Assembly: GCF_000143415.4 (NCBI RefSeq)
Contig: NW_003314293.1
Span: 651,763 to 715,762 of the forward strand
Source: Selaginella moellendorffii
Taxonomy: Eukaryota; Plantae; Lycopodiophyta
Direction of reading: 5' to 3'
Length of the DNA stretch: 64,000 bases
The position numbers and the translations under genes were made by a program. The first letter of the stretch is position 1; every line of letters starts with the position of its first letter. This document shows positions 26,775 through 48,407 of the stretch, piece by piece. A model generated the notes under the pieces. It was not told the DNA's origin and did no database searches. It worked only from the letters and a program-made list of their open reading frames with translations.

Positions 26775-28475
26775 TCAAGGGGAAAACTCCACGGAATAGA
26801 CCCTCTCCTCTTCACGGTTGCCAAAGTTGAGACGGCGAGCAGTCACCTCGATCATGGACCTCCCAAAGAACATACTCACTAGCACCGCCCGCCCTCGTCC
26901 CAGCTCCACGCCACTCGACACATCGATCCCGAAGCTCTCCTCCAGTGTGCTGCCCACCTCGGTCACAAACCTGGGATGATCTTTGATCGAGGTGTAGAGC
27001 TCCAGCCTGACCTTCTCCTGCTTGCTCCCGACTGGAGAAACGATCGTCTCGACCTTGGAGTCTTGAGGAACCGGCTGGTTCTTCCGGACGGAAACAAGGA
27101 AATTATTTTCACAGCACAGGTGGCCATCTTCGTCCACGAGCATATACTGGAGAGGATCTCCGACCTCGAAAGGACGAATGGAGCTCATGCCGTAAGTCCT
27201 CCTAGAGATCCTCGACAGGACGAGGCGATCGTCAAAGCCCAGCATCACAGCTCCATTGCAGATGGCGCTTCCAGGATTTGGAGGCACGAAAACCTTCGCG
27301 ACTCTCTCTTTGAACGCCTCCCTGACTCGCGTGACAAGGTAGGGGTTGTTCGCGAATCCACCGACGAGGAAGATGTATCTCACCTTGTCCGAGCTCCCGT
27401 CCAGCTGCTGCGAGATGAGATGGACGATCTTGTCGACCTCGGGATCAAACACGGCCTTGATATCGGTGGCGTTAAACTTGAGCTCATCGTACTCGCCATA
27501 GTCTCGTTCCACTCCAAGCTTTTCGTCGTGCTTCCTCCACGCTTTGGAGAGCTTGCCGGGGATGGTCCAGGTGCTAACAAAGTCCGGTGAGCCATCGAAG
27601 GAGCACTTGACTTGGAACCACCATTTCATGAGCTGCATTCGATTCTTGGCGAGCTTTACAAACTCCGGCAGGCATCCAATCTTCTCCGCGAGGAAGCTCA
27701 TCATGTTCTCGTCCACGAACGTTGCGCCACCTATGGCACCCGAGCAAGCGCTAGTCTCGCGGACCTTGACACCGTTTTGGAACGCTCGGGTGTGGACGAC
27801 AGTGTCGATGGTTCCACCACCGACGTCGGCAACCAGGAAAGTATCGTTTCTCTTGAACTTGAGCGAGTCTATGAGCTTTGTCTGGCAGTAGAAGGACGCG
27901 GCTTCCGGCTCGAGGATGATCTTGACGGGAAAGTCAGCGCTGCTGATCCCTGCTGCCTCGGCAAAGGTACGCATATTTTGTTTGGCAGCGTCGTCCCACA
28001 GGGCCGGAACCGTGAGGCACCACTGGACTTCTTCCTCACGGAAGAAGTTCTTATAGAGTTCTTTGAGCTGGAGCTTGGCAAAGGAAGAGATGCAACGGAG
28101 ATAATCGACTGTTACTTTCTCCACGCTGAGACCACGATGAAGAAGAAACCATGGAGGAAGAGGAGGAGAAGAAGAAGGTTGTGCCGGAGCTAGATGCAGC
28201 TTAAACTTGGTGACGAAGATGCTGCCCGAGTTGTGACGCTCGGCGTCGTGTCCCCAGTGCTGGAGCTCGAGAGATGGAGCGGACGAAGGCGATGGCCAGG
28301 AGGTTGAGTAGAGCAAGCTGGTTTGCGTCTTGCAATACGGCTTCGCTCCGACTTCTCTCTGGCTGGGCCATTCGTAGAAGGAGTGGATGTCGGATGGATT
28401 GGACCTGTGAGCAAAGGCGAATCCGGAGAAAGTAGTGCCGAAGTCGAGACCCACGACGTATTTTGGAGTGCTCAT
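26775..28475 (-). CDS. Atypical Hsp70 of the HSPA12 type, intronless
   Basis: VVGLDFGTTFSGFAFAH, KTQTSLLY, WCLTVPALWDDAAKQNMR, ILEPEAAS, VADVGGGTID, LVGGFANNPYL and SRISRRTYG. No EEVD tail. Confidence 0.88.
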   Translation of the reverse strand: MSTPKYVVGLDFGTTFSGFAFAHRSNPSDIHSFYEWPSQREVGAKPYCKTQTSLLYSTSWPSPSSAPSLELQHWGHDAERHNSGSIFVTKFKLHLAPAQPSSSPPLPPWFLLHRGLSVEKVTVDYLRCISSFAKLQLKELYKNFFREEEVQWCLTVPALWDDAAKQNMRTFAEAAGISSADFPVKIILEPEAASFYCQTKLIDSLKFKRNDTFLVADVGGGTIDTVVHTRAFQNGVKVRETSACSGAIGGATFVDENMMSFLAEKIGCLPEFVKLAKNRMQLMKWWFQVKCSFDGSPDFVSTWTIPGKLSKAWRKHDEKLGVERDYGEYDELKFNATDIKAVFDPEVDKIVHLISQQLDGSSDKVRYIFLVGGFANNPYLVTRVREAFKERVAKVFVPPNPGSAICNGAVMLGFDDRLVLSRISRRTYGMSSIRPFEVGDPLQYMLVDEDGHLCCENNFLVSVRKNQPVPQDSKVETIVSPVGSKQEKVRLELYTSIKDHPRFVTEVGSTLEESFGIDVSSGVELGRGRAVLVSMFFGRSMIEVTARRLNFGNREEERVYSVEFSP

Positions 28476-28830
28476 CGCGATTGTAGGGAACTTTGGACGC
28501 AAGAGAAAAGGATAGCACTGCTTATAAGTTAGCTCCTTCTTGCGAACTTGCAGTCACACTCGGCTGGGAAACTTAACTTTTGTGTTGGCCAAAAACAAGA
28601 TATAAATCGTATCAAATTTCGTTCGAGAGGATAGATAAAAACTTGGCAGCCTGTTATAAGCCGTTATCACCGATTAGTGTAGGCTTGTAGGCACGTCGGC
28701 TGAGAAAGTTTGAGCTTAATGTGGGAAGATTAAATACACATGCTGTTGTTTTAGAACCAAAGATGAAAAACTTACGAACTCGTTTTGGAGGCAAAGGTGA
28801 CAAGTTATGGTTTCATTGAGAGCCATTCTT

Positions 28831-31779: not shown

Positions 31780-33720
31780 ACTACCCCAAGATGGATGCTG
31801 CGACATTGAAGTGGGAAGCTAGCACATGAGAGAATTGCGAGGAGCAAATCCTTTACCTTGCAAATCTTGTTGTATGGCAAGTGCAGGAGCATGGACGAGG
31901 CAAAGGCAGTGTTCCCCAATGATTTATGTTGGTCGTAGCATATGCCCAAAACAAGCATCTTTGTGAGGCCCGGTTTCCCATAGGAAGAATGCCGCGGCCA
32001 AGCGTGGTCGCGTTTACGACAACCATAGCCACTTTTCCAGCAAATCCGGTTTGACCATGCAAGAGTCATGCTGGATCAAATGCCGCAGCTCGACGTCGTG
32101 ACCTGGACCATGATGATCGTTGTGAATGCGGATTTGGCAGCGGCAAGAGATGTCTTCAATCGAATGCCGCAGCGGAATGTGGGTCGTGGACAGCGACTGT
32201 GTCGGCTCTCGCGCAAGCCGGATCTTATCGAGACCACATATGTTTTCAAGTGGGACACATGTCGAACTTCATATTAGTCCGCTTAAACAAGGCGACCTTG
32301 TTCTCAGCTGGAAACGGAGAGGATGGCTCTGAATTAGTCCCCTGACATAGGTTCCTTAAAACCTTCATGTGACCTTGTTTATAGCAACGCGATTTTTACA
32401 GATGTGCCCGCCCGAGATCATCAGACAGCCCGGTCTAAGCTTTGTTCCGGGCCATGAAAACGTAAGATCACGTCACCACCAAGCGTCAGCGTCCTGGTTA
32501 AACAGCATTTCAAAGAAACAAACGAACTTGTAGTTACAAGGCGAGCAAACTATCCTTGTTATTCCCACTCAACTTAGGGAAGGCTGCAGGATGGCTACAG
32601 CAACTATGACTACGAGATCGAAAGCCGCGAGGTGGAATGTGGCGCGGGAAGCTATGGGAGTGTGAGGCTTGGCGTGTACAGGGAACAGGCAGTGGCAGTG
32701 ACGAGCAACANNNNNNNNNNNNNNNNNNNNNNNNNNNNNNNNNNNNNNNNNNNNNNNNNNNNNNNNNNNNNNNNNNNNNNNNNNNNNNNNNNNNNNNNNN
32801 NNNNNNNNNNAAAGAGAGATCGAAGTGATGCGCTCACTGAAAAGTGAGTTCCGCGTTCCTCGGCCGCGTCCAAAGGGGCTGGAAAAGATATTTGATCGTA
32901 TGCACGTAATTTCTGGACAATGATGACCGAAGCTTATTTCCAGCAAAGCCGGTTTGATCAAGGAAGAGTTTTGCTAGATCAGATACCGCAGCTCGACCGC
33001 GTCGTGGCCTGGACTGCGATGATCGTCGCAAATGCACAAGAGATCTCTTCGATGGAATGCCGCAGCGTGATGTGGTGTCCTGGACTACAATGGAGGAAGC
33101 TATTCGACTCGATGCCACGGGAATCCCACATCTCTGTAAATGTCTCCCACCAAAGAATATTACATAGGCTTTGAAAGAGCAAGACTTAACTTTTGATTTC
33201 ACACTCCAGTTCTTGGCTTCTGTGAACTCGGAGGATGGCTCTGAACTGTCAAGTAAAACCTCCATGATCTTGTCGACAGCAGCACAATTGTTACTAATGT
33301 GGCCGAGTGCAATCTTATACACTTTGTCCGGGATCACCAGGCGTTATAGCGTCCTGGTTAAACACAGGAAAGCCAGCGGGATAAAGTATCTTGGACTATG
33401 GAGCATGGTCATCATTCCCATGGGCAACGAATGACTACGCGATCGCAAGCCGCGAGGTGGATCCAATGTGGTGCGGGAAGCTATGGCAGTGTGAGGCTAG
33501 GCGTGTACAGGTTTCAGAGAGCAGCATCCGAAGAGAAATCGAAGTGATGCGGTCACTCAAAGGTGAGTTGCTGAGCTCGTAGGGCGTGGTGATTGCCAGG
33601 GATTTGTGTGGCAGTCTTTTTAGTCTGCATGGCAGAGGCATCGCTCACGAGGATGTCAAGAGTGACGCTCTGAACTTCGGGATGAGGGCCAAGATGTGTG
33701 ACTTTGGCACCGCCAGGCTC
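31780..33720 (+). pseudogene. Mosaic of decayed fragments: two units of PPR piece (+), FtsH2 C-terminal piece (-) and kinase N-lobe piece (+)
   Basis: PPR pieces match the 35208 gene (MPQLDVVTWT). Kinase pieces match the 43781 gene (ECGAGSYGSVRLGVY; IAHEDVKSD..CDFGTAR). FtsH-like YKIALGHISNN..DKIMEVLL on the minus strand. Stops and frameshifts throughout. Confidence 0.8.
32711..32810. other. Assembly gap (100 N)
   Basis: Run of n. Confidence 1.
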
Positions 33721-33999
33721 TCAATCAGGGACACCATTACATCCAGCCAAGTGATGAGATGCACTTGGTGTGGCACGAGGATTGGAGCCATGCTCATAAG
33801 GTCATTCTTCAAGGTTGCATTGCAGGAAAGGAAACTAAACAACAAACTTTCCATCGTCATCGGATTTATGTTTCTACTTATTGGATCGAATAACTAACAG
33901 TGTTACTTACATTCTCAGTTTTTATTTCAGACAACCATCGCTTAAATATATTTCAAAAAATTACACCATCAGTGTTTACATCAGCTGGCTTTAGGAGGC

Positions 34000-37235: not shown

Positions 37236-39419
37236 ATGTTGAGGAATGCACTGCGCAAGCAGTTCGTCCTCCTCGGTAAGAAGCCTCCTCTCGATCTTTT
37301 CTCCACGATCTTGGCTTCTCGATCTCCGGCACTCCGGTCTCAGCACAGCGAACCCACCCTCCTTCCGGATCTCCAGTCGAGCAGCGAACAGGAAGCGCTG
37401 GACCTCGTCCGCCAGTGCTGCGAGCTGGGATCTCTCGACCAGGCAAAGCGTCTCCACGCCTCCATCCTCGAGAAGGGCGTCTCCAGCGCCAAGCTCTTCT
37501 CCAAGTACCTCATCCGGATGTACGCGCAGTGTGGCAGCCTTGAGGACGCGCAGCGCGCATTCGATGGCATCGCTCACCCGGGCGTGGTCTCCTGGACCGA
37601 GCTCGTCAAGGCGTATGCCCACACCGGGCATCTTGGCGAAGCATTTCGCTGCTTTCGCTGGATGCTCCTCGCGGGCACCCGGCCGGATCTAGTCCTCCTC
37701 TCGCAGCTCCTCCTCCACCAGGAGCCTCCGCTCGGCCTGGAAGAAGCCAAGCTCCTCGACGCGATCGTCTGCTCGTCCGGGTACGCCAGAGATTTGCTCC
37801 TGGGAACTTCGCTCCTGGTCTGGTATGGGCGATGCGGGCGGCTCGAGGAGAGCAAGGCCGTCTTCTCCAGGATGGAGGGCCGCGACGCCGCTGCCTGGAA
37901 CGCGATGATCTGGAGCGCCATTCTCAGCGGCGAGAAGAAGGAGGCATTGACACTCTTCCAGGCGATGAAGGACGAGGGCGTTGCTCCGGAGGGTGTGGAC
38001 TACTGGGCGGCGCTCAAGGCCTGCGAGCTTGTCTCGGAGGTGAGAGCTCTCCACGCCGAGATCTCCTCGAGGAAGATGGAGGGCGATCCCGATGTGGCCT
38101 CGGCGCTCATCGACTGCTACGGACAGCTTGGTGAGCTCGAGGTGGCGGAGCAGCTCCTCTTCACTTTCGGTCTCGAGGAGGCCCCGTGCTGGACGAGCTT
38201 ACTCGTCGCGTACGCTCGCCACGGATACCACAGCCGGGTGATCCAAGTCTTCCACGAGATGCAGCACAGGCGCTTGACGGCCAACTTCGCCACCTTCGCC
38301 GCGGTGCTCGACGCCTGCGCCGGGCTGGGAGCTCTCGTCGAGGGGAGAGTCATCCACCGGCGAGTCGTCGAGGTCGAGAAGCTCCCCATCGCTGGAACTC
38401 TGGCGAGGTCCCTCGTCAGCATGTATGCCAAGTGTGGAGAGCTCGGGGAGGCGTGGAGCGTCTTTGAGGGTGTCACCGGCAAGCGGGAGCTCAGGCTCTG
38501 GAACACTTGCATCGACGCGTTCGCGGCTCACGGGCAGGGGCACTCGGTGCTCCAGCTCTTCCAGCTGATGCAGCAAGAGGGAGTGAAGCCGGATCAAACC
38601 ACCTTCTCGAGGCTGCTATTCGTCTGCTGCTACGTTGGTCTCATCGAAGCTGGCTATGCTTTCTTCGCCTTGATGATCACTGACCACTTGCTATCTCCTA
38701 GCCTGGAGAACTACGCCTGCATGGTCGATCTTCTGGGACGAGCTGGAAACCTAGATGGAGCTCAAAAACTTATCACCAGAACTCCATATCAATCCAGCCC
38801 CGTTCTCTGGAGGAGCTTGCTAGCGGCTTGTGGGATCCAAGGTGATGTCGAGCGAGGAAAACGAGCCGCTGTTCAGATCTTTACTTTGGATCCAACCATC
38901 GCGGAGGTATACGTGGTGCTGGCGAGAATCTACGAGAGCACTGCGAAACCGGCCATCGCTCGAAAGGTAAAGCTGCTGATGAAGGAGCGAGATGTAAGCT
39001 CGGAGCTAGCCCGGAGCTGGATCCAGATCAGTGGTGTCATTCACAGCTTCACCACTGGAGATCAAACTCATCCCCAAACCGAGGAGATATACGCTGCTCT
39101 CCAGAAGCTCGAGGCTGATTATCCGGCCTGGGAGGCTGCCGGGACGAGCAACAACGACTTGACCATGCACGACGTCGATGAGGAGGATGAAAACTCGGTT
39201 CACAGCGAGAAGCTGGCTCTTGTCGTTGGCCTGATGAACTCGCGGTTCCAGGAGAATGAGACGCCGGTGGTGGTGTTTAAGAACAAGAGGATGTGCCGTG
39301 AGTGCCACTCTTTCTTTGCGACGATATCGAAGGTGGCCGCTCGTGACATTGTCGTGCGGGACAGCTCCAGATTTCATTGGTTTAGACAGTGTTCTTGTTC
39401 CTGTGGGGATTACTGGTGA
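37236..39419 (+). CDS. PLS-E-DYW PPR protein (organellar C-to-U editing factor), intronless
   Basis: Transit-peptide-like N-terminus, PLS repeats, HSEKLA (HxE), KNKRMCRECH (CxxC), VRDSSRFH and terminal CSCGDYW. Confidence 0.95.
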   Translation: MLRNALRKQFVLLGKKPPLDLFSTILASRSPALRSQHSEPTLLPDLQSSSEQEALDLVRQCCELGSLDQAKRLHASILEKGVSSAKLFSKYLIRMYAQCGSLEDAQRAFDGIAHPGVVSWTELVKAYAHTGHLGEAFRCFRWMLLAGTRPDLVLLSQLLLHQEPPLGLEEAKLLDAIVCSSGYARDLLLGTSLLVWYGRCGRLEESKAVFSRMEGRDAAAWNAMIWSAILSGEKKEALTLFQAMKDEGVAPEGVDYWAALKACELVSEVRALHAEISSRKMEGDPDVASALIDCYGQLGELEVAEQLLFTFGLEEAPCWTSLLVAYARHGYHSRVIQVFHEMQHRRLTANFATFAAVLDACAGLGALVEGRVIHRRVVEVEKLPIAGTLARSLVSMYAKCGELGEAWSVFEGVTGKRELRLWNTCIDAFAAHGQGHSVLQLFQLMQQEGVKPDQTTFSRLLFVCCYVGLIEAGYAFFALMITDHLLSPSLENYACMVDLLGRAGNLDGAQKLITRTPYQSSPVLWRSLLAACGIQGDVERGKRAAVQIFTLDPTIAEVYVVLARIYESTAKPAIARKVKLLMKERDVSSELARSWIQISGVIHSFTTGDQTHPQTEEIYAALQKLEADYPAWEAAGTSNNDLTMHDVDEEDENSVHSEKLALVVGLMNSRFQENETPVVVFKNKRMCRECHSFFATISKVAARDIVVRDSSRFHWFRQCSCSCGDYW

Positions 39420-39519
39420 TAATAACTTTTTTCCTCATGAAAACTACAAACACCTAGCACTGAAACATCAAAGCTCATCACATAGTTTGCAAATTCTAAC
39501 CTTCCATATGGTAGAGATG

Positions 39520-40878
39520 TTAAATTAGCCTGTCGTAGACTTCCTGGGCAAATGGCCTGTTGCTAGCATCGTTGTCCATGCATTCTCGGATACAGGCAGC
39601 GACATCGTCAGTGTAAGAGCTGAGAAGGCTGAGTATGCTTTCCCGATGAGACACTGCCGGATCACTGCCAAAGACTTCGGTGTTGGACAAGAGAAAGGAC
39701 TTCCCGAGCTTGAGCTCCGCCATCACCACCCCCATCGAGTAGATGTCACACTCAAAGCTGTAGCGGCCACCAGCAATGCGCTCCGGGGCCTGGTAAATCC
39801 TCTTGCGGAGCTCGTAGTGTGGATCATTCCCCGACCTCTCCCTCTCGCTCATTTCCAGGGGATCTGCGAGGCGCGCTAGGAGGAACCCCGCGAGCTTGAC
39901 TTGCAAGCTTGCGGCTTGCTGCTGGGCGACGATGAGAATGTTGTTGGAGCTGATGCTCTCGTGCACAATGTGGCACCTGTGAAGATCGGCTACTGCTGCT
40001 GCCAGGCTCAGAAGCACACTGTTGGTGGCACCGGGATCTAGTCCTCCCAGTTGCTGAAAACTGTTAGCAATCTGGAATTCCAGGGTGGTGACTGCGGACT
40101 TGGAGTGGCATCCTTCCACCCGGCTCATAATATGATAGCTTCCATCCTGTTCGATCATCTTCTCCATCTTCACCAGGCCTAGCTCACTTGCTGGTATGTC
40201 CTGGTAGACGAGGATCAGCCTTCCAATTCGATTCAGCCTGCAAGCTTTGACCTTGGGCGTCGTGCCAACGGGAATGGTTTCAACGAAAAACACAGACCCA
40301 TCATCTGCCTCAAGGAGCCGGTCTTGGTCCTGCGGATTATAACTGGGAAGGCCCGCCATGCTTCGGGAGTAGACATTGCTGCTGATGAGATCTTGTTTTC
40401 TGATGGGCTTGAGATTCCTGGGATCCATGATCTTCGAGATAACTTTCCTGGAGTTACTCATGCCATCTCTATCTTTGTCCTCATTGTTACCAATATCAAC
40501 AATGCCGCCCTGTGCTTGCTTGGACAAGCTGACCAATATGTGTACAATGTTGACCAATTTCTCGATCTTGTCTAGCTGCTCGCGGACCCTCTTTGCTACA
40601 AACATGGATTCGTCGAGCACCTTTTGGAGCTTACACAGCCGATTGTAAATGCGCTGGTTGCAGAGCAACAAACCTTGTTTTTGCTCGTCAGAGATCCCCT
40701 TTTGGGTTTCAGCCACTGACCGGAGCTCCTTGTAGATCTCCACAGCAAGCACCATCCGAGCGTAGTCTTCCTGGTCGAGTCTCTCCAACAAACCCTTCAC
40801 ACGATTCAAGAGGTTAATGATGCTATCGATGGAGGCGACTAGGCCAACAACACCCGCCACAACACTGAAAGGATCCAT
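39520..40878 (-). CDS. HeLo/HELL-like helical N-domain plus pseudokinase (MLKL-like architecture), 452 aa, intronless
   Basis: N-terminus MDPFSVVAGVVGLV.. followed by about 120 aa of amphipathic helices. Kinase C-lobe with HESISSNNIL (no catalytic Asp), QVKLAGFL (GFL for DFG), YQAPE, DIYSMGVVMAEL and RP. Confidence 0.8.
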   Translation of the reverse strand: MDPFSVVAGVVGLVASIDSIINLLNRVKGLLERLDQEDYARMVLAVEIYKELRSVAETQKGISDEQKQGLLLCNQRIYNRLCKLQKVLDESMFVAKRVREQLDKIEKLVNIVHILVSLSKQAQGGIVDIGNNEDKDRDGMSNSRKVISKIMDPRNLKPIRKQDLISSNVYSRSMAGLPSYNPQDQDRLLEADDGSVFFVETIPVGTTPKVKACRLNRIGRLILVYQDIPASELGLVKMEKMIEQDGSYHIMSRVEGCHSKSAVTTLEFQIANSFQQLGGLDPGATNSVLLSLAAAVADLHRCHIVHESISSNNILIVAQQQAASLQVKLAGFLLARLADPLEMSERERSGNDPHYELRKRIYQAPERIAGGRYSFECDIYSMGVVMAELKLGKSFLLSNTEVFGSDPAVSHRESILSLLSSYTDDVAACIRECMDNDASNRPFAQEVYDRLI

Positions 40879-40907
40879 GAAGGCACTGTTCAGCTCACAC
40901 TTTATCC

Positions 40908-43781
40908 CTAGTGTTTTTCCTTCTCCAGTGACTCCTTCCAACTTCTGGCCATCTCAACATCTCGTTCAAGATCTTTGTCCCCAAGGAACTTCCTCCACTT
41001 TTCGACCCCTTGGGTGTCACCCAGGGCGTAGCAGTAGCGGAAGCAGACCGCAGCAGATTGGCGGTGGCGTTTCTTCTCGGCAGCCATGGCAAAAAAGTTG
41101 TAGGCTTGCATGGACACTTGCTTCAGTCCGGTTCTGGAGGCCACTAGCATTCCCATGTTAAAGAGGCTTTCAGCGTCAAGCTTGTCAGCAGACTTGGAAA
41201 CAAGCTCGATCAGCTCCTCCCCGTCTTTGTCTTGGTAACCAGCACCCGCTTGGTAGCACACTTGTGGATGCAAGCTCCAGAGTGATCGCCGAAACCAGTA
41301 CTCGGCCTCGCTTGTGTACTGACCTTTCTTCTGCACGAGTAAGAACGCAAGCATCGACGCTGCTCTTTCTGCACCATGGAGCAAAGCCTGTTTCAGTAGC
41401 TTCTCGGCCCCAGCCAAATCTCCTCGATAACGCAGCATGCCCGCCAGCTCCACCATGGCTAGCGAATTGCCGAGATCCACGGCTCGTTGCAGCAGCTGGA
41501 GCTTGCGTTCCCTGCCCACGCCCCCGCAAATGGCAAGCTGCAGCATTGCGGTGTCGTTGCCAGCTGAAACTCCCTGCTCCCACAGGCGGACTGCCATGTC
41601 ATTGTCTCCATTCTGGGAGAACTCCATCGCTTGCATGCTCAGGGCCTCGGCATCGCCCGCTTCGGCGGCAGCTCGCCACCATTCCATTGCCTTGCGTTCA
41701 TCTTGGAGCCTCCTTCGATAGAGAGCACCGATTTTTGTGACGACACTTGGCTCCATGTACTGCCTTTTCTCTGCGAGTATCTGGTGCCACTCGTCTGAAT
41801 GGAATTTGGCCGACATATTGAAGAGAGCGTTCATAGCCTTGATGCTGACATCTCTTGATTGCCTGAATATCCTCATTACCACTTCTTCTTCTCCCAGCTC
41901 GAGCAGACCATCCATAAGATCATACTCTACTGTCGACTTGTGACGATTCATTCGAAAAAACAGCAGTAGCTCGTCATCGGAAGTCGAGTTGAACCTCTTG
42001 CTCAATAAAGTTCTGAGCCTTATGCAAATAGAGTTCAGCGCGAGACGTCCTTTCCCTTCCCGGTGAATCCTTGTATTGAGGATTAAAGCTTTCATGCAGC
42101 TCAACCTGGCCCAGCCGGAAGTCATCCTCTCTAAATTAGCGGCTGCAGTGTAGAAGTCAATTGCATCCGTGTTCTCACATCTCAGCTTGTACAAGTCGCC
42201 AATGAACTCAAGCAGTGCGCCGTTTCTCGACTCAGCCAAGAGCCCTGCCTTGTCAATCGTGCCTTTGACAACACTCCTGAGGATTCTCCCCAAGAGGCTC
42301 CCACCCTCGACGCTCCTCTCCAGAAACTCCATCTCTTTGGCAGGAAGCTCGCGGTAACCCGGGTTGACGGCCATGTAGAAGAGTGCTAGAAGTGCCTGTG
42401 CGTGTGCATATCCCGTCTTGGCTGCTTTCAAGAGAAGATCGAGTACGTTCCTGTGGTTGCCATTGACCGTGGGAGCAAACTCAAGACAAGAGCTAAACAT
42501 TCCGCTCCGCAAACTATATACGTTGGCAAACTCCACTTGAGCATACGCGTTACCCCGGCTAGAAAGCTCTGCTAGATGCTGTATTGCATCACCAATTCCC
42601 ATCCTGGTTTGTATCATTGCCAAGTAGTAGTCCACAAGGGCGCTCATCAACATGTTGACACCGATCTCGTCTTCGAGCATCACAAGGCAGTCCTTGAACA
42701 GTTCCAATGCTGCCTCCCAGTTTCTTTGGCATCCGTAGCCATGGAAGTTCATGATACCCAGAAAGAGCTTGGCCACTGCGCTTTCAGACGTGGTAAACAC
42801 GTCAAATGCCTCCTCGTTTCGTTGTTGATAGAAAAGCATCCTGCCCTGGCGGATGAGGTCGGCGTTGTCGCCTTCTTCGTTCTCAAGGAAAGTGTCGGTC
42901 CAATAACACGCCAAGTTGACCCTCTCCGCCTCCCCAATGGCATGATCAAGCAGACCTTTAAAGCTATCGAAATCACGATCATCGCTGGAGTAAAGATGGT
43001 CAAGAGCATCAAGGACCTCATCGCAGCTGGGCCTTTCGAGTGGGCAGGAAGCCAAACACTGGATTACGATTTCAACGTCGCCGAGGAGCTCTTGCAGCAC
43101 AAGGCCAAGGCTGTAGATGTCAGAGGCCAAGCGATGGTACATACTGCCAGGAGGAGCAGCCCGTTTCTCGGGTGCCATGAAAGCCGGTGTGCCGAGTACC
43201 TCCCCAAAGTCATTGTCGCCCATCTGTCTTGCGGTGCCAAAGTCACACAGCTTGGCCCTCAGCCCAAAGTCAAGCAACACATTGTCACTCTTGACATCCT
43301 CGTGAGCAATGCCTCTACCGTGCAGGCTGCAAAGGCCGCCACACAAATCCCTGGCAATCACCACCTTGAGACGGCCCGACAAGCTTTGGCCGCTCGCATC
43401 CAGCAACGCCCTGAGCGATAAGTTGTAAGCGAGCTCCATGACAATGCAGCGATCATCATCCAGCCCCGTTTGGACGCGGCCGAGAAACTGGACGACGCGG
43501 GACTCACCTTTGAGTGACCGCATCACTTCGACCTCTCTTCGGATGCTGCTCTCTGAAACACCTCGGTTGTAGCTCTTGACTGCCACTGCTTGTCCCCTGT
43601 ATACGCCTAGCCTCACACTGCCATAGCTTCCCGCGCCACATTCCACCTCGCGGCTATCGATCTCGTAGTCATTGATATCTTCGTTGCTGTAGCCTTCCCG
43701 CAGCAGTACTATTGGGGATGGAGATGCTGAGCAGTCCATAGCTCTTAGTTGATTGCGTTGTAGGCTAGTTATATTCCCCAT
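40908..43781 (-). CDS. Non-RD TKL-type protein kinase fused to SEL1-like repeats, 957 aa, intronless
   Basis: GAGSYGSV, VAVK, RREVEVM, HEDVKSDNVLL, DFG and GTPAFMAPE. SEL1-like repeats include LLKAAKTGYAHAQALLA, AMEWWRAAAEAGDAEAL and LQRAVDLGNSLAMVELA. Confidence 0.9.
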   Translation of the reverse strand: MGNITSLQRNQLRAMDCSASPSPIVLLREGYSNEDINDYEIDSREVECGAGSYGSVRLGVYRGQAVAVKSYNRGVSESSIRREVEVMRSLKGESRVVQFLGRVQTGLDDDRCIVMELAYNLSLRALLDASGQSLSGRLKVVIARDLCGGLCSLHGRGIAHEDVKSDNVLLDFGLRAKLCDFGTARQMGDNDFGEVLGTPAFMAPEKRAAPPGSMYHRLASDIYSLGLVLQELLGDVEIVIQCLASCPLERPSCDEVLDALDHLYSSDDRDFDSFKGLLDHAIGEAERVNLACYWTDTFLENEEGDNADLIRQGRMLFYQQRNEEAFDVFTTSESAVAKLFLGIMNFHGYGCQRNWEAALELFKDCLVMLEDEIGVNMLMSALVDYYLAMIQTRMGIGDAIQHLAELSSRGNAYAQVEFANVYSLRSGMFSSCLEFAPTVNGNHRNVLDLLLKAAKTGYAHAQALLALFYMAVNPGYRELPAKEMEFLERSVEGGSLLGRILRSVVKGTIDKAGLLAESRNGALLEFIGDLYKLRCENTDAIDFYTAAANLERMTSGWARLSCMKALILNTRIHREGKGRLALNSICIRLRTLLSKRFNSTSDDELLLFFRMNRHKSTVEYDLMDGLLELGEEEVVMRIFRQSRDVSIKAMNALFNMSAKFHSDEWHQILAEKRQYMEPSVVTKIGALYRRRLQDERKAMEWWRAAAEAGDAEALSMQAMEFSQNGDNDMAVRLWEQGVSAGNDTAMLQLAICGGVGRERKLQLLQRAVDLGNSLAMVELAGMLRYRGDLAGAEKLLKQALLHGAERAASMLAFLLVQKKGQYTSEAEYWFRRSLWSLHPQVCYQAGAGYQDKDGEELIELVSKSADKLDAESLFNMGMLVASRTGLKQVSMQAYNFFAMAAEKKRHRQSAAVCFRYCYALGDTQGVEKWRKFLGDKDLERDVEMARSWKESLEKEKH

Positions 43782-44069
43782 ACCATCGTGAGAGATGGTT
43801 CGTTGCGGCTGGAATCTCTGCGAATTCGGAGAGCATGACTCCCTGTTGACTTGGCTCGCTTAGCTCGCTTAGCCATGTCCTTTGTCATGAGCCCTTGTTA
43901 CAACTATAGCAGTGAGCAATTTCATGCTTGCATCAGCCTTGGATTCAAAACATGGAGTTCTGAATAACATAAAAAATTTAAATCTTGCTCCTTGAAGCTT
44001 ATCAAGGCCGATGCCAAAGCAAATTTTATAACTATAAATGTCTTTGAATCCCACCTCTCTGCACATGTC

Positions 44070-45730
44070 TGGTCACGACGTCGAGCTGCGTTTTTTATCC
44101 ATCTCGATCAAACCGAAACTGTGGAAGTCGTCGTCAAGGAACAAACATCTCTCGAGCCACTCGTAAAGCTCCGTTCATGGCAAGTCTTTGAATGATCGTG
44201 GTTCCAGGCCACCACATTCCACTCGGGCATTGATCAGCAACCATTGATATGGAATATCAATAACGTAGTTATTGATAACTTCGTTGCTATAGCCTTCTTG
44301 CAGCAATGGGGATGGAGATGATGCAGAATCTATAGCCGTACCTAACAACAAGGACGCGTTGTACCCATTCCAGCGGGAAAGATGGTTTGTGATTGTACCT
44401 TTGGAATCAAAGGATGAGGCAATCTGTGGGCCAAGAAAATTTAATTTCCAACTTTTCTTTTTGTCATTATTTGATCCGAGTCATGCAACATGCAATCTGT
44501 TGCCAAGCAGGCAATATCATCCATTCATTCATATACTATTTACCTTGTAACGGCCTCCAAGAAGCATGAGACCAATGGAATTAAATATGCCGTGTTGAAA
44601 ATTGCTGTAGCTGTTTGTCGTCGGCATCTATGATACACAGTAAACTGCGAGTCCAAGGAAAGACTGGAGTTGAGGAGAGAATCACGGCAATGTCACTAGC
44701 ATGCGCAATCTGAATGTTGCCAGGCAAAAGTCCACAGGTGGAGGGGTAAAGCAGACATACTACTCCAAATGTTGGCCCTGGCTTTAGCAGAATTTGCAAT
44801 TTACAAATACAGGACAATTAACAATTGTCATCCTCGAATTTAGCCGTCTCCGTTTGGAGATTCTAGCACGGTGAAGGAGATGGGGTGGAGCAGTTGAAAA
44901 CATGGACAGAGATAATCTTGAAACACTGCACACCGAACTGATAGACCAACTAGAGTTATGGACATGGCAAGCAATGGTGTTCTTTTGTATTGCATCAGCC
45001 TGGGCCAGGGGTTTGGTGGTGGCGTGATCTTACGTAATGATGGCCTAGAACTCCATGCTCGAGAAGGTTAGAGTGGGGTGTCGATCTTGGATGGTCACAA
45101 TCCTGAAACTTTTAATTGAGAAAGAAACCATAAGAGGGGATGAATTTAGAGCCATCCTCTCTGAGTTCACAAAGATTCCAACCGAGAACAAGGTCACCTT
45201 GCGTAAACGGACTCGGTTGCAAGCGTATACAATATTCTCTAGTGGGAGACATGTATAGTATAGACCACTGGAAGACATATGTAGTTAGAGATTCGTGATG
45301 GCAAGCTTCAGGGCCTTGATAAGATCTCTGGCTTGGGCTGAGCACCGACACCATTGCAGTCCACGACACCACAGCCCGCTGCGGCATATGATTGAAGAGA
45401 TCTCTTGTCGATTCCAAATCTCCGCTCTCGGCATTTGCAACAATCATTGCGGTCCAGGTGACAACGGCAAGCTGCGGCATTTTACCCAGCAAAGCAAGGC
45501 CCTTGCTTGATCAAACCGGCTTTGAGCTTCAATCATCGTCACCCAGGAAATCACGTCCTTGACTGGCATACGCTCAAACATGTCTCGAGTTCCTCGTAAA
45601 TCTCCGTTCATGGCAAGTGCCTGACTGATCGTGTTCCAGGCCACCACATTCCACTTCCGGCACAATGCTAAATCTTCTTGGGACTCTTTAAGCCTTTGCA
45701 CAAGCGGCTATGGTGGCCTTAAACGCGATC
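44070..45730 (-). pseudogene. Mosaic of decayed PPR (-), kinase N-terminal (-) and FtsH2 C-terminal (+) fragments
   Basis: PPR pieces at 44070-44235 and 45300-45720. Kinase piece SASSPSPLLQEGYSNEVINNYVID at about 44250-44337. FtsH piece MMA*NSMLEK..LIEKETIRGDEFRAILSEFTKIPTENKV at 45010-45195. Confidence 0.8.
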
Positions 45731-45973: not shown

Positions 45974-48407
45974 TCATTTCGCGAGCTTCCCTTCGGCTCT
46001 AGCAGCCTCCTTGACGATGACGTTGATTCCTCGCACCCAGAAATCTGCATTGCTCTCACCCGATGCCTGAAAGTGCACCTCTCTCCCGGTGCTGGTGATC
46101 ACCCTGAAGGTTCCAGGCCCATCGTCGGACGACCTCCTGTTCTTCTGAAACCTGCTTGAAGCTCCCAGTCCGGCTTCCTTACACGCCACCGTACGCCTGC
46201 TTGTGTTACCCCACGTAAGCAAGCCCGTCCTCAGCATTCGAACCGACTTCAAGTGAGGAGTTCCCTTGCCTTGGCGAGTGTGCTTCGATAGCTGGCCTCC
46301 CAACAGGACAAGCTTCATCGCAAGGTGATCGAGGAGGACCTCTTCAGCCGCTTTCGTTGAGCTAGCCCTCTGGGCCAGAGTCAGAGCTGTCTCTCCCCTG
46401 CCGTTTGCGAGATTGCAATCGGCCCCCGCGTTTAGAAGCACTCTGCAAGCTTCTGCGTGCCCTTCCTTCGCGGCTAGCATCAGCGGGCTGTAGCCTTCCT
46501 CGTCCAGCAAGTTCACGGCGTATCCATGCTTGAGAAGCTTGCTCACACCTTCCAAGTTTCCCCGCCATGATGCGAAGTGGAGCGGCTTGAAGTTCTCCAC
46601 CTTGAGCAGGTCGCAGAGGATAGAATCCAGGAGGATTTTTTCCAGTTGCTCCAGCCAGCCACTGTACGTTGCAAGACATATGGCTGTCTCTCCTTTCCTG
46701 TTCTTCAAGTTCATGTCGGCTCCAGCATGCACGAGCAGCCGGAAAACTTCGACGTGACCGGATTGAGCAGCTATCATCAGAGCAGTGTAGCCGTATTGGT
46801 CTTGAGCGTTCACTTCCAAATACGGCTCCTTGAGAAGCCTCGACATGACTTTCACGTCTCCTCTCTTCGCGGCAAAATGAAGCTGCGAAAACACGTGAAG
46901 GTTGCTTGACTGGATACTGCATCCCGATTCGAGGGCCTTCCATATCACGTCGTTGAAAGATGCACCGTTGCCATTTGCTTTTGCTACTGTAAGAGCACTG
47001 TTGCCGCCTGTGTTTATAAACCCCGCATCTGCCCCGGCCAACAGCAGCTCCTTGCAGCACTGCTCGAGTCCCAGTCTCGCTGCTAGCATAAGACCTGTCT
47101 CCTCATTAGCTCCCACTACGTTCAAATCACATCCGTGTGAGATGAGCGTCTGTAGTATCGGAAGCGACCCATACTTGAGCGCCAAAAGTAGCGGAGGAAA
47201 CTCTTCGTCGGCTTTTGTGTGTATACCGTCCTCGACGTTGGCCCCGGACTTGAATAGCAATTCCACTGCTGGTGCATTGCGGCAAAGAATTGCATGGCAG
47301 AGAATTGTCCTCCCAAAATGATCGTCGTTTGGAGAGAAGTAGTTCAGAAGAAGCTCCAGTACTGCACCTGTTTCTTCCCAGTACTCAACAGCACACCATA
47401 GCTCGTTGTATGGGCTTGCTAGGCCTGCACCGACTCGCACTTCCTCCAGAGATCCAGGCTCCCATGACCATGCTCCGAGCGATGCCTTACACCCAGTTTT
47501 TGCTCCTGCCTGTAAAGAAGCGATAGGACGCATTAGTTCTTAGAAATTAAAACGACGAACTTTGTTCTAACAAGTGATAGTTATGGCATACCTCCAGAAG
47601 ATATTTGACAACGTGAACTTGCCTCCCAACGATGGCGGATATTAGAGGTGTACACCTTACGTTCGCATGAAGAGCTGGCTTTGCCGATCGCAGCAGCATT
47701 CTATACCACGAGTTGATGTCTACTCCACTCTACACTTTCGCCCATCAGTTTTTCAAAAAAACAACTCTTTGTTGACAGCATACCTGGATGAGAGCTTCAA
47801 CGACGTCCAGAAAACCCCGGTTACTTGCGTAAGCAAGAGCTTGCACGAGCACTTCGGGCCTTATCATCTCCGACGAAATAAGAATGTGCACGGACTTCAC
47901 TTGCTGATACAGGCAAGCTTCGAGCAGGGCGTCCTCCAAGGCGAGTTGGCCGGCACCAGACCTTTGCAAACAATTCACGATCTCGTGATGGCCCTCTCTT
48001 GCTGCTGCCGTGGACGCATAGCCTCTGAAAAGCTTTTCATTCGGGTCAGCTCCCGCAAGCTGCGAATAGAAGAATGTTTAATGTCAGCGAGAGAGAAAAA
48101 AAAAACTCCGGCATCGATATCTTACCAGTAGCATCTTCGCAATGTAGATGTGACCTGCGTGCGCAGCTGCAAACAAAGCAGTGACATCGGTTTTAAAAAT
48201 CTCGTGGTCGATCTTTACTTCGTCGGGAGCCTCCTCGTGCTGGATAGAATCCGTGTGCTTGACACGCAGACTCACGGGCCCCTTGTAGTTGACATCCACG
48301 ATCTGATCCGACAGCGCCTCGGAGACTCCGAGAACATCGCCCGCCAGAGCGCATTCTATCAGCCGCTGTGACACCGCATGCTCGCCCGCCATAGTCTTCG
48401 CATACAT
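45974..48407 (-). CDS. Ankyrin-repeat protein with C-terminal PH-like domain (At5g14230-like)
   Basis: VSQRLIE..DVTALFAAAHAG, many ankyrin repeats (GYTALMIAAQSGH, GYSPLMLAAKEGH) and C-terminal KHTRQGKG..LTWG..WVRGI. Confidence 0.9.

Follow-up and report, generated by a model that had tools for sequence, protein, structure and literature searches.

Cell killing by MLKL under the control of a triggering kinase is regarded as a vertebrate invention, and no kinase that activates a plant MLKL is known. This article describes two adjacent genes of the lycophyte Selaginella moellendorffii, here called gene 1 and gene 2, located at positions 39520-43781 of a window of 64,000 nt, the whole stretch of DNA analysed (assembly GCF_000143415.4, contig NW_003314293.1, positions 651,763-715,762, forward strand); all coordinates below are positions in this window. 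Gene 1 encodes a kinase domain followed by Sel1-like repeats, and gene 2 encodes an MLKL-like protein. The assignment of gene 2 to an undescribed MLKL-like family of non-seed plants, represented in moss, lycophyte and fern, is well supported. The further proposal, that the two genes constitute a functional module specific to the S. moellendorffii lineage and operating as a kinase-triggered, MLKL-like cell-death switch, is offered tentatively and falls somewhat short of probable.

Vertebrate MLKL resembles gene 2 in several respects. The proteins are similar in size (469 residues in the 4btf chain and 452 amino acids in gene 2), and each consists of a four-helix bundle, which in gene 2 is predicted, a linker and a terminal pseudokinase domain. 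In both, H-x-N/S occupies the place of the HRD motif, G-F-x following KLA occupies that of DFG, and a serine is found at the corresponding place of the activation loop. In contrast, the two bundles have no match at the level of sequence, and the host of gene 2 is a plant. Gene 1 differs from vertebrate RIPK3 in carrying Sel1 repeats, in lacking a RHIM and in having its best matches outside the RIPK proteins. Furthermore, the RIPK3 and MLKL genes are neither adjacent nor represented in a common RNA, whereas gene 1 and gene 2 are both.

Seed-plant MLKLs (AtMLKL1-3, Pm13 and wheat R3AK with its NLR) share with gene 2 the combination of a HeLo or four-helix bundle and a kinase or pseudokinase domain, and have roles in plant immunity. 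They have been described across seed plants, with a serine-rich tail after the kinase domain (bioRxiv 10.1101/681015), whereas gene 2 ends 11 residues past R441-P442 and its family is from moss, lycophyte and fern. Arabidopsis MLKL chains, whose inclusion in the searched set is unconfirmed, are absent from the 60 best matches listed for the gene 2 profile, in which mouse MLKL comes first. The program NLRtracker labels proteins as 'MLKL' in every plant lineage on which it was run (PMC11218826). In wheat and across Poales, linked NLR and MLKL genes form a pair in which MLKL executes cell death (bioRxiv 10.64898/2026.08.07.743466); there the partner is an NLR, whereas the neighbour of gene 2 encodes a kinase-Sel1 protein. 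An earlier note on this DNA, made from its sequence alone, had known of no described plant system with such a two-gene layout, which holds for the combination of kinase-Sel1 and MLKL but not for linked sensor/MLKL pairs in general, given those of Poales. In the literature collection searched, 'MLKL' and 'Sel1 repeat' occur together solely in an unrelated protist-symbiont preprint.

In fungi, HELL domains are joined to kinase or pseudokinase domains (PMC12881547), and this order of helical bundle and kinase-like domain recurs in gene 2. The N-terminus of gene 2 (MDPFSVVAGVVGLVAS...), like that of fungal HeLo/HELL proteins, has many hydrophobic and small residues. Unlike those proteins, gene 2 matches none of the Pfam models HeLo, SesA and PigL_N and has no evident amyloid motif or NLR partner, and it resides, together with gene 1, between PPR genes of a plant in each haplotype. 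Glomeromycotina have undergone very large expansions of the Sel1 and Pkinase_Tyr families (PMC9453076). Among Mucoromycota kinase-Sel1 proteins, BGZ98_002967 of Dissophora globulifera resembles gene 1 in having a TKL-type kinase followed by Sel1 repeats that align with those of gene 1, and in a similar gap in the alpha-G region of its first kinase domain. It differs in sequence (25-34% identity) and in having two kinase domains rather than one, and its locus has no MLKL-like neighbour, whereas gene 1 is resident in a plant beside one.

Gene 2 and its MLKL-like family

The kinase domain of gene 2 is recognized by Pfam (expectation value, E, 3e-16) despite the loss of the glycine loop and the replacement of HRD by HES and of DFG by GFL, and the single sequence already matches MLKL at 1.6e-7. 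A word-indexed homology search with gene 2 returned no relatives; the family was found by exhaustive search, to which a profile search added just one further Adiantum copy. The relatives are P0121, a protein from a 1.85-kb RNA-type contig that is 45% identical to gene 2 over its full length, PNR37260.1 of Physcomitrium patens, and three copies from Adiantum nelumboides. The long top matches of the exhaustive search, considered as possible Selaginella paralogues, proved to be protist, arachnid or metagenome kinases, or sequences bearing no source name. Members of the family are stand-alone proteins of 409-452 amino acids that begin with Met and a helix in which hydrophobic and small residues abound. 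The Asp of HRD is missing from all of them (HES or HKN), as is DFG (GFL, RFI or GLI), while all retain APE, the Asn of the catalytic loop, the Asp of alpha-F and Ser344 of the activation loop.

When the family profile was compared with 177,635 distinct sequences of solved structures, the mouse MLKL entries 4m68 and 4btf ranked first and second (E 8e-19 and 2e-18). The alignment of the profile with mouse MLKL pairs HkNInS with HRNISS, vkLagf with VKLAGF and YeaPER with YVSPER. It also places Ser344 beside the activation-loop serines of mouse MLKL, a place that, on this alignment, is taken to be the site of RIPK3 phosphorylation in the mouse protein. On these sequence comparisons, the motifs of the gene 2 pseudokinase are nearer to those of animal MLKL than expected, and we read the resemblance as specific kinship with the MLKL pseudokinase or as very close convergence upon it.

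The N-terminal part of gene 2 was modelled with AlphaFold2 (AF2), using the first 190 residues and a 6-row family alignment. A single-sequence model was unusable (predicted local distance difference test, pLDDT, 40), and an alternative alignment, A2, was set aside for folding because MAFFT had aligned glycine loops from other kinases with the N-terminal helix. In the accepted model residues 10-123 form four helices (pLDDT 70-89; predicted template modelling score 0.60), and residues 124-190, with two short helices, have pLDDT values <55. No other 19-residue stretch of the protein is as hydrophobic as residues 6-24 (Kyte-Doolittle hydropathy 2.11). Exhaustive structural alignment gave the Rx CC domain as the best match of the bundle (Z 13.5-13.8, root-mean-square deviation 2.2-2.4 Å, 104 of 107-108 residues aligned), with further matches to the NRG1 CC-R domain (Z 10.5-11.4), the Sw-5b N-terminal domain (Z 10.8) and the MLA13 CC domain (Z 10.0). 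The bundles of MLKL were also recovered, a likeness at the level of fold only, in 4btf (residues 2-116, Z 9.8, 2.0 Å, 90 residues aligned) and 6ux8 (Z 8.4). Bundles of the CC, CC-R and MLKL kinds are over-represented near the top of the structural ranking.

Other comparisons of the N-terminus were less specific. Its profile had no meaningful matches among the sequences of solved structures, and an atlas shape search with the bundle returned weak helical matches only. By language-model features, which serve as leads only, the closest clusters were those of Ascomycota HeLo proteins for the N-terminal part (0.92) and those of HeLo/DUF7580-kinase proteins for the whole protein (0.96). The N-terminus is likely a four-helix bundle of the CC/HeLo/4HB kind, with homology to those domains not proven. 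The helical bundle and dead kinase of MLKL type that the earlier note had recognized in the downstream gene are both supported, by the four modelled helices and by the rank of mouse MLKL in the profile search.

Transcription and haplotypes of the gene pair

The locus comprises two minus-strand open reading frames (ORFs) without introns, 29 nt apart, as established by ORF calling and RNA. The TAG stop codon of gene 1 occupies 40910-40908, and the ATG of gene 2 lies in a different frame. The RNA evidence consisted of two raw stranded RNA-seq runs (X21 and X22) and two RNA-derived contig sets, covering 39100-44600. Minus-strand coverage by reads is unbroken from ~39468 to 43883, including the spacer, and a single RNA-derived contig of 4723 nt (39180-43896) crosses the spacer as well. 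No splice joints were found in the reads or contigs of this interval; therefore both genes are intronless. Some RNA thus extends from the end of gene 1 through the spacer into the beginning of gene 2. Reads from both haplotypes cover the spacer, and both alleles are expressed. The layout of two intronless genes on one strand at a distance of 29 nt, as the earlier note had given it, is thus confirmed by the ORFs, the stranded RNA and both haplotypes.

The GenBank annotation of 39520-43781 is wrong. In a public collection the product of gene 1 clusters with EFJ22078.1 (SELMODRAFT_443349), which is annotated as a fusion of 1365 amino acids, and the second model here, EFJ22079.1, is a chimera of 243 amino acids. 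Each model requires introns, and the locus is considered mis-annotated because these introns have no supporting RNA reads. A fusion by frameshift or read-through was also considered and ruled out by the differing frames together with an additional stop codon in the spacer of the second haplotype.

Haplotype 2, the same region on scaffold GL377610.1, is 97.6% identical across the stretch, and both ORFs are intact in each haplotype. Its spacer is 38 nt long as the result of a 9-nt insertion that contains a stop codon in the frame of gene 2, and the insertions and deletions within its gene 1 repeats sum to three bases, keeping the frame. The ratio of nonsynonymous to synonymous substitution rates (dN/dS) between the haplotypes is 0.59 for gene 1, with 0.55 in the Sel1-like region, and 0.28 for gene 2. 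An excess of synonymous differences is seen in gene 1 (p = 0.031), in gene 2 (p = 0.021) and in both combined (p = 0.004). Both genes are under purifying selection.

The Sel1 region of gene 1 (40800-42899) diverges between the haplotypes by 2.7-3.7%, equal to nearby non-coding DNA, and the kinase domain, gene 2 and adjoining coding regions diverge by 0-1.7%. In a simulation that introduced 69 random substitutions, 7% of trials left the repeat ORF open (p ~0.07), which is not decisive. The Sel1 repeats are fast-evolving yet constrained, a pattern that fits a sensor domain and relaxed constraint equally; their divergence could be due to diversifying or to relaxed evolution of the repeats.

Gene 1 and its genomic surroundings

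The kinase domain of gene 1 is recognized by the Pfam Pkinase model (E 4e-32), and its catalytic motifs are complete: GAGSYG, VAVK (K69), the non-RD motif HEDVKSDN (D162 and N167), DFG (D180) and APE. Among the 60 best solved-structure matches listed for gene 1, the leading ones are LRRK2, CTR1, TNIK, DLK, RAF and IRAK4, from which the kinase is judged to be mainly TKL-like, and no RIPK is among these 60. A RHIM-type motif, (I/V)Q(I/V/L)G, is absent from the proteins of gene 1 and gene 2. The suggestion of the earlier note that gene 1 might be a RIPK-like kinase is not upheld by these matches (LRRK2, CTR1, DLK, RAF and IRAK4) or by the lack of a RHIM.

The repeats of gene 1, spanning ~650 amino acids, match the solved Sel1-repeat proteins 6deh, 6ork, 6ur7 and 8sxq (E 9e-6 to 1.5e-3) and the Sel1 region of the Dissophora protein (BLASTP E 2e-11), although the score of the Pfam Sel1 model is under the cut-off (14 vs 30.7 bits). 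The best non-self match of gene 1 is this same protein of D. globulifera (Mortierellomycota), BGZ98_002967 (E 2.4e-40). Atlas clusters with an architecture of kinase and Sel1 repeats, scoring 0.96 to gene 1, are from Mucoromycota and Parabasalia, and the architecture of gene 1 is otherwise typical of these groups. From its motifs and matches, gene 1 appears to encode a catalytically equipped, TKL-type non-RD kinase on a Sel1-like solenoid. The coordinates of the features of both genes are listed in Table 1.

Table 1. Features of the gene 1-gene 2 locus, in positions of the 64,000-nt window
Feature	Position	Strand	Description
Gene 1 coding sequence	40908..43781	-	957 amino acids, intronless; kinase and Sel1-like repeats
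Gene 1 kinase domain	43017..43655	-	~residues 43-255; TKL-like, non-RD (HED); K69, D162, N167, D180, APE
Gene 1 helical / Sel1-like repeat region	40947..42884	-	~residues 300-945
Spacer, gene 1 stop to gene 2 ATG	40879..40907	-	29 nt; transcribed
Gene 2 coding sequence	39520..40878	-	452 amino acids, intronless; MLKL-like; ATG at 40878, stop at 39520
Gene 2 predicted four-helix bundle	40510..40851	-	Helices 10-31, 36-58, 64-89 and 95-123 (AF2)
Gene 2 linker	40309..40509	-	Residues 124-190; low-confidence model, helices 142-151 and 161-166; possible brace
Gene 2 pseudokinase domain	39523..40308	-	HES (306-308), GFL (331-333), no glycine loop; N313, APE, D378 and R441 kept
Gene 2 Ser344 codon, activation loop	39847..39849	-	Invariant in five-sequence family alignment
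Transcribed span	39430..43896	-	RNA contig and raw-read coverage

The pair has plant-like surroundings: several PPR genes, one of them DYW-type, and, upstream, an ankyrin-repeat gene. Contamination was ruled out: in both haplotypes PPR genes flank the pair on scaffolds >1.5 Mb, and gene 1 and gene 2 are therefore residents of the genome. The DYW-type PPR gene (37236-39419, plus strand) converges on gene 2, and since the two stop codons are 100 nt apart, the 3' ends of the transcripts probably overlap. The ankyrin-repeat ORF (45974-47533, minus strand, 519 amino acids) lies on the strand of gene 1, 2.2 kb upstream of it, and is annotated with 743 amino acids in haplotype 2. Farther away, at 26775-28502 (minus strand), an intronless ORF of 575 amino acids has a weak match to Hsp70/actin-like ATPases (Pfam HSP70 4e-11, partial region).

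Decayed fragments of a kinase domain of the gene 1 type, 46-80% identical, were found at 32584-32857 (plus strand), 33430-33897 (plus strand) and 44211-44336 (minus strand), and one of them is truncated and has VAVT in place of VAVK. PPR-like ORFs lie between these fragments, and an assembly gap, written as a run of N, is present at ~32710-32810. Their presence in the window indicates past local duplication at this locus. Two observations concern the RNA of gene 1 itself. Its 5' leader contains several upstream ATG codons, including that of a 5-codon upstream ORF that overlaps the start. Within the gene, a piece of 33-35 nt at 42967-43001 is also found in an unrelated and far more highly expressed transcript; there, reads and contigs (word depth ~430 in X1) match that piece alone, and the flanks differ on both sides.

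A candidate kinase-to-MLKL switch and its alternatives

In the proposed module, the pseudokinase of gene 2 would restrain its own four-helix bundle, and the Sel1 solenoid of gene 1 would bind either a ligand or a partner. The kinase of gene 1 would next act on the pseudokinase of gene 2, the probable target being the part of its activation loop that surrounds the invariant Ser344, and the freed bundle would oligomerize and act on a membrane, leading to an immune or cell-death output. That the two proteins are linked, physically or enzymatically, is inferred, and so are ligand sensing, phosphorylation and membrane activity. The sensor-kinase half of the proposal is a reasonable hypothesis that rests on the spacing of 29-38 nt in two haplotypes and on shared transcription.

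Several results weigh against a functional module, and a number of them favor an account in which the genes are independent neighbors, with gene 2 using a promoter within the 3' end of gene 1 and its product controlled in some other way, as must hold for its relatives in moss and fern, which stand alone, with gene 1 encoding an unrelated kinase-Sel1 signaling protein, and with the spacing arising by local duplication or insertion where the region rearranges. This account is a serious contender, if still on the doubtful side. No kinase-Sel1 gene is called within 10 kb of the three Adiantum loci, the transcript of P0121 has a non-coding leader of 115 nt and no kinase-Sel1 partner, and no pseudokinase neighbor is present at the locus of the Dissophora relative of gene 1. 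Among the relatives examined the pairing is seen in Selaginella only, and the recurrence elsewhere that the earlier note had raised was not seen at any of these loci. The homology search with gene 1 gave no plant relatives, and the decayed kinase fragments at 32584-33897 and 44211-44336 are further signs of local duplication. RNA depth over gene 2 exceeds that over gene 1 by a factor of ~4-5; run X22 drops clearly near 40940, and run X21 shows a gradient instead. At this excess most gene 2 RNA is possibly made independently and may begin within the 3' end of gene 1, although the same pattern could result from 3' bias. Leaky scanning for second ORFs occurs in green algae (PMC7896298, PMC11291117). 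Scanning past 957 codons is implausible as the route by which gene 2 is translated, and its translation from a dicistronic mRNA is accordingly unlikely; an mRNA of its own is therefore expected. Against independence, a spacing of 29-38 nt that is kept in both haplotypes and crossed by RNA is unusual for unrelated eukaryotic genes, and the kinase adjoins a pseudokinase of the sole family known to have a dedicated kinase switch, which a functional link would fit. A decaying, lineage-specific locus, with one or both genes becoming pseudogenes and having no present function, would account for other features of gene 1. The earlier description of gene 1 as an intact-looking, non-RD TKL kinase with ~650 amino acids of SEL1-like repeats agrees with its motifs and matches but overlooked that the C-lobe is ~39 alignment columns short in the alpha-G region, between DIYSLG and ERP, so that kinase activity is not assured. 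An additional nucleotide at 43751 in haplotype 2, confirmed in an RNA contig, shifts the first ATG of gene 1 out of frame. The allele of haplotype 2 must therefore start at MDCSAS (residue 15), and the myristoylation-type start MGNITS, encoded from the first ATG, is allele-specific. The dN/dS of gene 1, the divergence of its Sel1 region to the level of nearby non-coding DNA and the indecisive simulation of ORF survival also point toward decay. Nevertheless, decay is quite improbable, given that the ORFs are intact in both haplotypes with repeat indels that sum to a multiple of three, that the excess of synonymous differences is significant and both alleles are expressed, and that gene 2 combines a low dN/dS with 45% identity to a distant relative and retention of all family motifs.

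The output of gene 2 is a separate matter. Gene 2 could be a non-lytic signaling or scaffolding pseudokinase in which the bundle is a generic interaction module and the output is signaling, with or without gene 1. Helical bundles can reach ~Z 13 by common arrangement alone, and the scores of generic bundles, the Cbl TKB domain and designed proteins among them, come close to those of the cell-death domains. Foldseek, a structural check that the earlier note had proposed, found no match of the bundle among solved structures at E <=0.001 (best 0.37), and CC and MLKL bundles emerged from exhaustive structural alignment instead. Gene 2 and four relatives had no matches to the Pfam models HeLo, MLKL_N, SesA and PigL_N (HeLo and MLKL_N to E 10). 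In Arabidopsis, MLKL-dependent immunity is reported to be separable from cell death (bioRxiv 10.1101/681015). A non-lytic role is still unlikely in view of the very hydrophobic N-terminal helix, the HeLo-like language-model features, the MLKL-specific motifs of the pseudokinase, and the enrichment of CC, CC-R and MLKL bundles among the top structural matches. The remaining account is that of a single protein, the 1365-residue fusion EFJ22078.1, in which an intron would excise the stop codon of gene 1 together with the 30 initial codons of gene 2. It has the deposited annotation in its favor and can hardly be right: no joints were found in the two RNA-seq runs or the contigs, the frames of the ORFs differ, the spacer of haplotype 2 has an extra stop, and the relatives of gene 2 begin at the same N-terminus of Met plus hydrophobic helix.

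The functional module of gene 1 and gene 2 might also be given a broader evolutionary interpretation, as a plant counterpart of kinase-to-MLKL necroptosis, in which gene 1, as a dedicated kinase bearing a Sel1 sensor domain, would phosphorylate an animal-type, MLKL-like executioner that is encoded 29 nt further downstream and shares its transcript. The kinase-Sel1 gene would perhaps have been acquired anciently from a fungus resembling Mucoromycota, and the MLKL-like family would be ancestral to non-seed land plants. This broader interpretation is rather unlikely as a whole.

The results define a compact MLKL-like family in moss, lycophyte and fern that carries the degenerate active-site motifs of animal MLKL. 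As two short intronless genes, the pair offers a concrete test of a kinase-to-MLKL switch in plants. It also bears on the origin of plant sensor-executor gene pairs, on Sel1 solenoids as immune sensors outside fungi, and on the eukaryotic expression of two long ORFs that are just 29 nt apart.

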